A stretch of 64,000 bases of DNA from assembly GCA_907165135.1 (NCBI GenBank), contig OU015568.1, positions 16,007,208-16,071,207 of the forward strand, read 5' to 3'. Below, in pieces: positions 7,503-9,440 of the stretch; the first letter of the stretch is position 1; each line of letters begins with the position of its first letter. Under the pieces are notes generated by a model. That model was not told where the DNA came from, ran no database searches, and saw only the letters and a list, made by a program, of their open reading frames with translations. A program made the position numbers and the translations under genes. This stretch comes from Oikopleura dioica. Its lineage: Eukaryota > Animalia > Chordata.

Positions 7503-8096
7503 TTAGGACTCGGATTTCTTTGTGCCGCGCAGTAGTGGGACTTCTGGGAGGGAGCGATTAACGTCGGTAATCAAGGGAAACATCTGCTTGTCGTTTATGA
7601 AGCTCTCCAGGATCGCTTTTGAGATGTTGGCTGAATGAATCATTAATTCAATCAGAGAAATTGCAGAGAGAAGAAATTGAACTTACAGCCTTTATTTTTA
7701 GTTCGCCACTGTTCATCTCTTTTCGCAACCCGTAGATGCAGCCGATCCATGAGAACATCCTGTCCCAATCCCGGAATTCGACCAGCTTTTGTCAAAAACG
7801 GCGTTGCCTCCCCAATCGATTCCTTCAAAAAAAATGAGCCACTTTTTATCATCCAAACTAACCTTTCTATGTCCGAATGCGTCCGGCGTCTCTGTAGCTT
7901 TTTTCTTTCCCGTGACTCGTAAAACGCTCTTTCTGTTGTCAGATAAAATGCTGCTCATTCTTTCGGATCTTCGCTTCCGCGGCCGCTTTGCCGGTGGAAC
8001 ACGAGGAATCGTCACTCGTCCTGTTTCATCTTTTGCCTCTTCAGAACCTTTCTCAACCTCCTTTTCAATCTCTTTGGATCCGCTTTCGCTCGCCAT
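7503..8096 (-). CDS. Orphan ~170-aa protein, basic NLS-like N-half, 3 exons
   Basis: ATG preceded by TGTAG-A. In-frame GT-AG joins give ...PPAKRPRKRRSER...FGHRK/ESIGEATPF...KNKG/..NISKAILESFINDKQMFPLI...KKSES*. No family recognised. Confidence 0.6.
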
Positions 8097-8244: not shown

Positions 8245-9440
8245 TTAGTTCTGAATCGGGCGACGCTCGTGAAGGGCTGTTCGCACTTCCCAAGCGAGTG
8301 CTCTTCGCTTCTTTGTTGTTGGAACGACGTAATCTGTCGTGATCTTGCGACGGGGCAACACTGGTTCTGGGTCTTTCTGGGACATGATCTTCCTTACAGC
8401 CTGTCTCTCCTAGCAATCATTTGGCAAAAATGATCTATAAAAGTCCAAACCTTATTCCACTCCCCCGTTGGTAATTTGAATTTTCCCCAATCGTCTCGAT
8501 ACTTCTGGAAGAGCTCTACCGGCCCATCTTTCCGGCCCGTTTTGAAGTGAGGCTTGAGAAAAGCAGGCGCGTTCGAGCCTCTTTCGCCGTCCCAGTATCC
8601 ATCGTTCCTTGGAGCAGGCGGTGCGGTCTGCGGCCTTGCGTAAATTGGAGTATGGTCTTGATTATCATCAAATCGCACTTTTGATATCTAATATACAGCT
8701 ATAAAAGCTGCTAACAAGTGAGTTCCAACCTTTTTAATCGCTGTTTGTGGCCTGCTGGGTTCGATTTCACTGTTCTGTCTTCTGATATTAATTTTGAGTC
8801 GATCTAGTCTATCTCGTAACTCGGAGTCGATTGTGGAAATGCTCATCAATGATTGAGTATCGTAATTATTCGTATTATCCCGTTCAATGGAGACGATAGA
8901 GTCGTTCGGTCGCACCGATTCGATTACAGAGACGAAGCTTTCGCCATCGTTGCTTTTTCGGAGAACTTTTCTGGTTATTTTTGAAACCGGCGCTGTTCGG
9001 AAAAACGACTCTGAAATCGACGAACTTGATGTTGAAACAATGCTGCTTGCGTCGGAGTCCGAGTGTTGACCGGCGCGATGCTGGTTTGGATGAATTTTTG
9101 GTAGCGAGATGTATTCCGTAGCATCGGTTATATCCAAGAACGAGTCGCCTGTTGTCTTGGGAAGTGTTATTTTACGATTATTGAAAAGCGGAAATACCTG
9201 TAAATCATAATCTAAAGGCTTTGGGTCGGCTGAATTATCGTCTGCTAAAAAGAAACTTCTCACGTGTATCTTATTCATAAACTCACCCGACAAAAGCCTT
9301 GAAATATCAGAATGAAACTGCTCTAGCCTCTCCTCCCCCACGTCACCATATCCGAGAGCGGCCAGCTGCGCCTTTATTTCTTCTAGTGAAAAACTTGCTG
9401 AGTCATTCGATACCATTCTAGAGCAGGAGACACTCATCAT
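8245..9440 (-). CDS. HYLS1: Hydrolethalus syndrome protein 1 (centriole/basal body)
   Basis: N-terminal EEIKAQLAALGY, central RKVLRKSNDGE, and the C-terminal HYLS1 box ...PVELFQKYRDDWGKFKLPTGE...YVVPTTKKRRALAWEVR. Confidence 0.85.

Follow-up and report, generated by a model that had tools for sequence, protein, structure and literature searches.

Glycine at the position of human Asp211 in HYLS1 of Oikopleura dioica: sequence evidence for a natural compensated pathogenic deviation

Introduction

Can a ciliated chordate do without an aspartate whose replacement by glycine is lethal in humans? The question was raised by a stretch of 64,000 nucleotides of Oikopleura dioica DNA (contig OU015568.1, positions 16,007,208–16,071,207; hereafter, the window), in which an earlier reading of the letters (the original prediction) had noticed a HYLS1 protein with glycine at the site of human Asp211. 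Oikopleura dioica is a ciliated animal. The aspartate is reportedly conserved, and functionally needed, in C. elegans too.

In humans the substitution D211G causes hydrolethalus syndrome, and the equivalent mouse knock-in, D226G, is perinatally lethal (bioRxiv 10.1101/2024.03.06.583733). The allele is recessive in both species, and it has been described as causing reduced centriole recruitment, reduced CEP120 binding, a failure to build incomplete microtubules, or transition-zone and Hedgehog defects. The published phenotypes are partial and depend on the tissue or the assay. The role of D211 is disputed accordingly among a contact with tubulin tails, CEP120-dependent recruitment, and transition-zone or Hedgehog defects with normal ciliogenesis. 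CEP120 reportedly binds HYLS1 and recruits it, in a way that is sensitive to D211. In the tubulin-tail model, D211 contacts residue G437 of TUBB, and the change G437E abolishes function (PMC10960023).

Variants that cause disease in people but are the neutral wild type elsewhere, where they are presumably suppressed by compensatory changes, are termed compensated pathogenic deviations (CPDs) in one study (PMC6606640). That study describes CPDs as tending to affect the human protein less severely than the average pathogenic mutation does.

Results

The HYLS1 gene of the window

The HYLS1 orthologue lies on the minus strand at positions 9416–8245 of the window, as a single-copy gene of five exons. 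We placed the exon boundaries by comparison with P0002, a spliced relative of 330 amino acids that also served as the proxy for the full-length product and that carries the Pfam domain PF15311. Exon 1 (9287–9416, minus strand, as are all features below) was recognized from its open reading frame and sequence and from its match to the start of P0002. It begins with ATG at 9416–9414 and encodes the conserved N-terminal motif FSLEEIKAQLAALGYGD, for which the family consensus is F.EEEI..QL..LGY. The motif F..EEI..QL..LGY is therefore present in the window, and its L18 and G22 are nearly invariant in the consensus of our full-length alignment, A1. Intron 1 (9245–9286; 42 nt, GTGAGT...TTTTAG) is in frame and free of stop codons; its 14 codons are missing in the spliced P0002, and P0001 and P0005, which are genomic-contig proteins, read through them. 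Exon 2 (9198–9244) was likewise taken from the comparison with P0002, and intron 2 (9156–9197; 42 nt, GT...AG, also in frame) corresponds to the P0002 junction between DYDLQ and TTGDSF. Exon 3 (8730–9155) encodes the serine-rich, poorly conserved middle part of the protein and is 97% identical to P0001 and 75% identical to P0002. Intron 3 (8688–8729; 42 nt, GTTGGA...TATTAG) contains an in-frame TAG, and P0002 joins AIKK to ISKVRFDD at this point.

The last two exons encode the two-part HYLS-1 box. Exon 4 (8451–8687), which was assigned by translation, Pfam and a family HMM, holds the N-terminal half of the box, including RKDGPVELFQKYRDDW. Its residues 42–76 match positions 4–38 of the Pfam HYLS1_C profile (PF15311), and it scored 21 bits, ungapped, against our own family HMM. 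Intron 4 (8410–8450; 41 nt, GTTTGG...TGCTAG) falls at the P0002 junction between EWNR and ERQAV. Exon 5 (8245–8409) ends in the stop codon TAA at 8247–8245 and encodes the C-terminal half of the box, YVVPTTKKRRALAWEVR; its residues 2–46 match HYLS1_C profile positions 44–89 at 42.2 bits, where the curated Pfam cut-off is 27 bits. The box tryptophan and the invariant C-terminal P, K, R, W and R (VPT.KKR.AL.W.VR) are all present in the window, as they are in its closest relatives, the clade of O. dioica lineages and two marine-plankton sequences that is described below.

A genome-wide HYLS1_C scan (64,281,565 bases, 19 contigs) found this one locus, at 40.5 bits, and no second one. Outside the clade, the best full-length match was the ‘hydrolethalus syndrome protein 1 homolog’ of Ciona intestinalis. 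The 90% cluster of P0002 contains CBY36370.1, CBY38807.1 and CBY19015.1, each deposited as an ‘unnamed protein product’ of Oikopleura dioica; UniRef labels them HYLS1 C-terminal domain-containing proteins, and the UniProt name of the protein is no more than an automatic, domain-based one. The runs that contained this stretch were small genome-sized assemblies and marine plankton metagenomes or metatranscriptomes. P0002 itself is encoded on two intron-less 1.15 kb metatranscriptome contigs (L006, L007) of a Bergen-type lineage, so this sister lineage expresses and splices HYLS1; for the lineage of the window itself, 2 poor reads at the gene came from RNA run X21. The published Okinawa assembly of Oikopleura dioica, OKI2018_I69, measures 64.3 Mbp in 19 scaffolds (PMC8008620). 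We concluded that the gene is, by its sequence, a single-copy and intact HYLS1 orthologue of an Oikopleura dioica lineage. The identity given to it in the original prediction was borne out by the Pfam match, by the single locus, and by the Ciona HYLS1 homologue being the nearest protein outside the clade.

All four introns of the gene are only 41–42 nt long, the first two being in frame and stop-free. Gene callers applied to genomic or metagenomic contigs run through them, or on into the following intron, which gave spurious inserts or tails in proteins such as P0001, P0003 and P0005; such short introns are a systematic annotation hazard for genomes of this type. Downstream, a minus-strand open reading frame at 8096–7713 (MASESGSKEIEKE..., 127 amino acids as listed) begins 149 nt past the HYLS1 stop, and an AATAAA at about 8144–8139 lies between the two. 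Operons are known in O. dioica, and the tight same-strand spacing could reflect one here.

Alignment of the glycine to human Asp211

On the minus strand, positions 8537–8508 read GGC CGG AAA GAT GGG CCG GTA GAG CTC TTC, which translates as GRKDGPVELF and upholds the placement of the Gly codon, GGG, at 8525–8523 (that is, 8523–8525). The codon GAT at 8526–8528 encodes an Asp one residue before the Gly, in a variable column; we refer to it as the preceding Asp. Two anchor proteins tied the alignment to published numbering. The NCBI-named mouse HYLS1 (P0198) has its Asp at position 226, and its D226G knock-in was published as the counterpart of human D211G (bioRxiv 10.1101/2024.03.06.583733). The human motif quoted in the original prediction is identical to the corresponding segment of Pongo HYLS1.

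We compared four alignments: MAFFT L-INS-i on 99 boxes; A1 (MAFFT, 63 full-length proteins), in which the near-invariant D252 column corresponds to G252 of P0002; A2 (95 boxes), in which the column comprises 91 D, 3 G and 1 S; and an HMM trained on 91 sequences, none of them from the clade, which gave this placement the top posterior probability. All four set the Gly ungapped on the Asp column, with RKDGPV against the family's KK-t-D-P-V and no gap. The register is held upstream by a Lys at −2 (K in 84 and R in 7 of 91 sequences) and downstream by Pro at +1 and Val at +2 (V in 90/91), followed by Y/F, Y/F and W. Gly, and not Asp, stood in the D211 column in every alignment tried, whether by MAFFT or by HMM, and the Asp stood one residue earlier, as had been predicted. 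The outcome that would have counted against the original prediction, an Asp in this column, did not appear. We concluded that, as aligned here, the Gly at 8525–8523 is homologous to human Asp211.

The preceding Asp had been suggested as a possible source of rescue. The column before D211 is variable, with T, C, S, M, D, N and other residues in the family and D, D, R and S within the clade, where the Asp at −1 (8528–8526) is restricted to the O. dioica lineages. One clade relative combines its Gly with Arg at this position (NNKRGPV), and another combines Ser in the D211 column with a further Ser before it (KQKSSPV). Gly and Ser are thus tolerated without a preceding Asp, and rescue by a shifted Asp fails as a general explanation; in O. 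dioica itself the preceding Asp may contribute.

Fixation of the glycine codon

Contigs from three runs (X1, X4 and X6), representing three studies and organism labels A and B, cover the Gly codon. The original prediction had recognized that a sequencing error would undo it. Among the better-supported differences listed for these contigs (54 less-supported ones stand outside this set), none fell at 8523–8525, and those in the two box exons, at 8520, 8481, 8583, 8607, 8616, 8338 and 8293, were all synonymous. The motif KDGPV was found in every box-containing member of the 90% cluster with the Bergen proteins CBY36370 and CBY19015, and the same GGG is present in Bergen-type cDNA.

A comparison of the window, which is of the Okinawa type, with the Bergen-type cDNA covered 133 codons of the two box exons, of which 62 differed silently only and 10 by a replacement. 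For these exons dN was 0.03–0.04 and dS was saturated; dN/dS was about 0.02 for exon 5. The codons around GGG differ silently between window and Bergen (GGC/GGA, CGG/CGT, CCG/CCA, GTA/GTT, CTC/CTT and TTC/TTT), and GAT GGG is unchanged. We concluded that the Gly is a fixed wild-type state under strong purifying selection, and that HYLS1 here is to all appearances a functional gene, neither decaying nor a divergent paralogue.

Origin of the replacement

Outside the clade, the D211 column contained Asp in 91/91 representatives, making it one of seven exception-free columns. A motif count over the 233 proteins fetched gave 192 with Asp versus 4 without. The carriers of Asp include the choanoflagellates Monosiga, Choanoeca and Acanthoeca, the ctenophore Bolinopsis, the rotifer Adineta, the ascidians Ciona and Styela, fish, a frog and many mammals. 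The four non-Asp rows are P0002 and P0004 (O. dioica type, Gly), P0245/P0006 (Gly) and P0230 (Ser, codon AGT). The Gly-bearing relative with NNKRGPV is 58–65% identical, and the Ser-bearing one is more distant; P0245 and P0230 were recovered from marine metatranscriptome assemblies and are probably other appendicularians. Three further candidates for a missing Asp (P0063, P0112 and P0117) proved to be draft fish gene models in which the segment was missing or misaligned, and they were excluded. As to the sampling, a word-indexed search with the box region of P0002 returned its own clade only, and the wider relatives came from an exhaustive representative search. A profile search with A1 gave, among the matches listed, mostly mammals; it supplied the mouse and Pongo anchors and P0230 as a new relative, without broadening the range of invertebrates.

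When the trait column was left out of the tree, the non-Asp rows came together in one clade with an SH-aLRT of 100, whose stem measured 1.79 changes per column. Because these four rows are monophyletic, a single change suffices, and with choanoflagellates as the outgroup the ancestral state is Asp. We concluded that, on this tree, a single replacement of the Asp took place along the long stem leading to the O. dioica lineages and their two marine-plankton relatives. The shortest codon path would run from Asp (GAY) through Gly (GGY) to Ser (AGY). No box in the sample is as derived as that of the clade, which deviates at 9/26 highly conserved columns where the others have a median of 1 and at most 7. 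Its departures include PGE to PTG and LRW to ERQ, HRM or VRR. Oikopleura proteins are notoriously fast-evolving.

Copy number differs in another tunicate of the sample. Styela clava (the P0046 cluster) has several HYLS1-like loci, namely LOC120335581, LOC144424339, LOC144424340 and others, within one 90% cluster. This suggests a recent tandem amplification, in contrast to the single copy of O. dioica.

Predicted helix start and associated changes

We used the family alignment to build AlphaFold2 models of the O. dioica-type box and the mouse box. The O. dioica-type model (mean pLDDT 77) has helices at residues 39–52, 60–72 and 94–109, and the mouse model (mean pLDDT 82) has them at 38–52, 58–73 and 95–110. 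The residue just before the first helix is Gly38 in the O. dioica-type model and D226, residue 37 of the fragment, in the mouse; the modelled helix start is of moderate confidence, with pLDDT about 72–74 for residues 31–40. These models suggest that box helix 1 is N-capped by the residue of the D211 column. Helix-capping statistics show a preference for Asp, Ser, Thr, Asn and Gly at the N-cap, for Pro at N1 and, in the ‘capping box’, for Glu at N3. The only replacements of the Asp within the clade are Gly and Ser, and the Pro at N1 is kept.

Two clade-specific changes follow in the same helix. The Glu at N3 and the Leu at N4 (GAG CTC, 8511–8516) are candidate compensators. The N3 column is acidic (Glu or Asp) in 4/4 clade members versus 3/91 others, and the N4 column is Leu in 4/4 clade members versus 1/91 others, 85 of which have R or K. 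The canonical pattern D-P-V-[A/N/S/T]-[R/K] is thereby replaced in the clade by [G/S]-P-V-[E/D]-L. Judged from the alignment, the acidic N3 and the lost basic N4 are better candidates for compensation than the preceding Asp. Since all four carriers stem from one event, these changes are inseparable from shared ancestry and do not lend themselves to a statistical test of co-variation.

HYLS1 partners in O. dioica

The genome contains a CEP120-like gene (PF12416 match, 62 bits). Loss of CEP120 was considered as a reason for a relaxed requirement for Asp, and simple partner loss was excluded by the presence of this match.

We also inspected the β-tubulin tails. Those of O. dioica read EFDEEE or GFEEEE, so that the residue after the Phe is acidic in 5/5 complete tails and Gly in none of the five. 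In human TUBB, we take G437 to lie directly after the tail Phe. Acidic β-tubulin tails are usual in invertebrates that keep the HYLS1 Asp. An acidic residue after the Phe would fit repulsion of a HYLS1 Asp, and we counted it as evidence neither way; among these tails, all of them from O. dioica, no lineage-specific feature was established.

Two observations on the tubulin loci are recorded here. One β-tubulin locus, L023 / L027 (G000:C2:214921-218876), ends in ...SEYQQYQARVVNLETKI and then a stop, with no acidic tail; either an intron after QQYQ went unrecognized or this is a β-tubulin without the usual C-terminal tail. Two α-tubulin loci, L018 (G000:C5:10357302-10360595) on contig 5 and L019 (G000:C11:48761-52054) on the small contig 11, have identical scores and identical C-terminal peptides; they could have arisen by recent duplication, or could reflect an uncollapsed haplotype or a duplication in the assembly.

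Discussion

The original prediction described the Gly of O. dioica HYLS1 as a natural compensated pathogenic deviation in a ciliated chordate, and our results agree with it: the residue is homologous to D211, it is fixed, and the gene around it is under purifying selection. As far as sequences can tell, then, this is a natural compensated pathogenic deviation, and the mechanism of compensation can be proposed in outline. We think it probable that O. dioica has a functional, single-copy HYLS1 in which the Asp was lost once and Gly or Ser became tolerated through local changes in the helix. Gly and Ser, like Asp, cap helices well, and the Pro at N1 was retained. The clade would have moved its negative charge to N3, where Glu or Asp gives a capping-box arrangement, and would have dropped the Arg or Lys at N4, which in canonical proteins could pair with the Asp. 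Together these N3 and N4 changes may keep the helix start and the binding surface working without the Asp, so that O. dioica HYLS1 would still work at centrioles and basal bodies.

Two considerations bear on this proposal. Gly is harmful at D211 in human and mouse even though it is a good N-cap, which indicates that capping alone is not the whole role of the Asp. In addition, 9/26 conserved columns are altered in the clade, so that the tolerance could be owed to any of many other substitutions, or to altered partners. A more specific version of the proposal is that larvacean HYLS1 constitutes a natural suppressor set, consisting of the Pro at N1, the acid at N3 and the Leu at N4, or else a co-evolved partner surface; we offer this only tentatively. 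If it were true, transplanting the set into human D211G would restore centriole recruitment and ciliogenesis, and the models of D211 function (helix capping, CEP120 binding, β-tubulin tail trapping) would become separable.

A different account, which we regard as possible though appreciably less likely than tolerance through local helix changes, is that nothing in the helix compensates: the interaction requiring the Asp would have been lost or rewired in larvaceans. Mammalian work supplies the candidates for such an interaction, namely CEP120-dependent recruitment, β-tubulin tail trapping, and transition-zone or Hedgehog roles. The very long stem of the clade would be expected from an episode of relaxation, as would its nine altered columns against a median of 1 elsewhere, and the partial phenotypes of D211G imply that the Asp serves only part of HYLS1 function. 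Yet the box is now under strong purifying selection, and a CEP120-like gene is present. The replacements, moreover, are no random set, being only Gly and Ser, both N-cap formers, and the N3 and N4 changes are common to all members of the clade.

It is very unlikely that the preceding Asp (8528–8526) is the functional equivalent of D211 and the Gly a one-residue insertion before the Pro. An Asp does stand directly before the Gly in all O. dioica lineages, and family members have linkers of differing length upstream of the box, so that spacing alone would permit a shift by one residue. Such a shift, however, would throw the near-invariant Lys at −2 out of register, and it was chosen by no aligner or HMM. 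The two other lineages of the clade have Gly-Pro-Val or Ser-Pro-Val with no Asp within five residues upstream, and the helix of the O. dioica AlphaFold2 model begins at the Pro, which makes Gly, and not Asp, the N-cap. An artefact, whether an error of sequencing or assembly, a pseudogene, or a divergent paralogue beside a canonical copy, is scarcely credible for a codon that is free of listed differences across the contigs of three studies, recurs as GGG in Bergen-type cDNA, and lies at the only HYLS1_C locus of the genome in an intact frame with GT-AG introns and a dN/dS of about 0.02.

In overall design, the O. dioica protein resembles human HYLS1, mouse Hyls1 and Ciona intestinalis XP_002126027.1, with which it shares the N-terminal motif and the two-part box. 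It has the same three predicted helices, keeps the invariant W, P, KKR, W and R, and is likewise single-copy. It differs from the known proteins in having Gly for Asp, an acidic N3, Leu for Arg or Lys at N4, PTG for PGE, and ERQ for LRW. Compared with human p.D211G (mouse D226G), it has the same Gly at the homologous position, where the residue is the fixed wild type in O. dioica and a lethal allele in the mammals; its surroundings differ from those of the human allele in having Pro rather than Arg at N1, Glu at N3 and Leu at N4. Unlike typical CPDs, this one corresponds to a lethal allele, in a column that is free of exceptions in 91 representatives reaching out to choanoflagellates. Our literature search found no published mention of Oikopleura together with HYLS1. 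We regard the case as a new example of a known phenomenon at an otherwise invariant site; because CPDs are well known and Oikopleura is fast-evolving, the surprise is moderate and not fundamental.

A lethal ciliopathy has HYLS1 D211G as its founder mutation, and what the mutation does at the molecular level is under dispute. The O. dioica lineage provides a natural experiment on what D211 does, together with a short list of candidate compensating residues and a ready protein for rescue and binding assays. Because Gly was kept through deep divergence in a ciliated chordate while the rest of the box stayed constrained, the Asp of the HYLS-1 box would seem not to be strictly indispensable.
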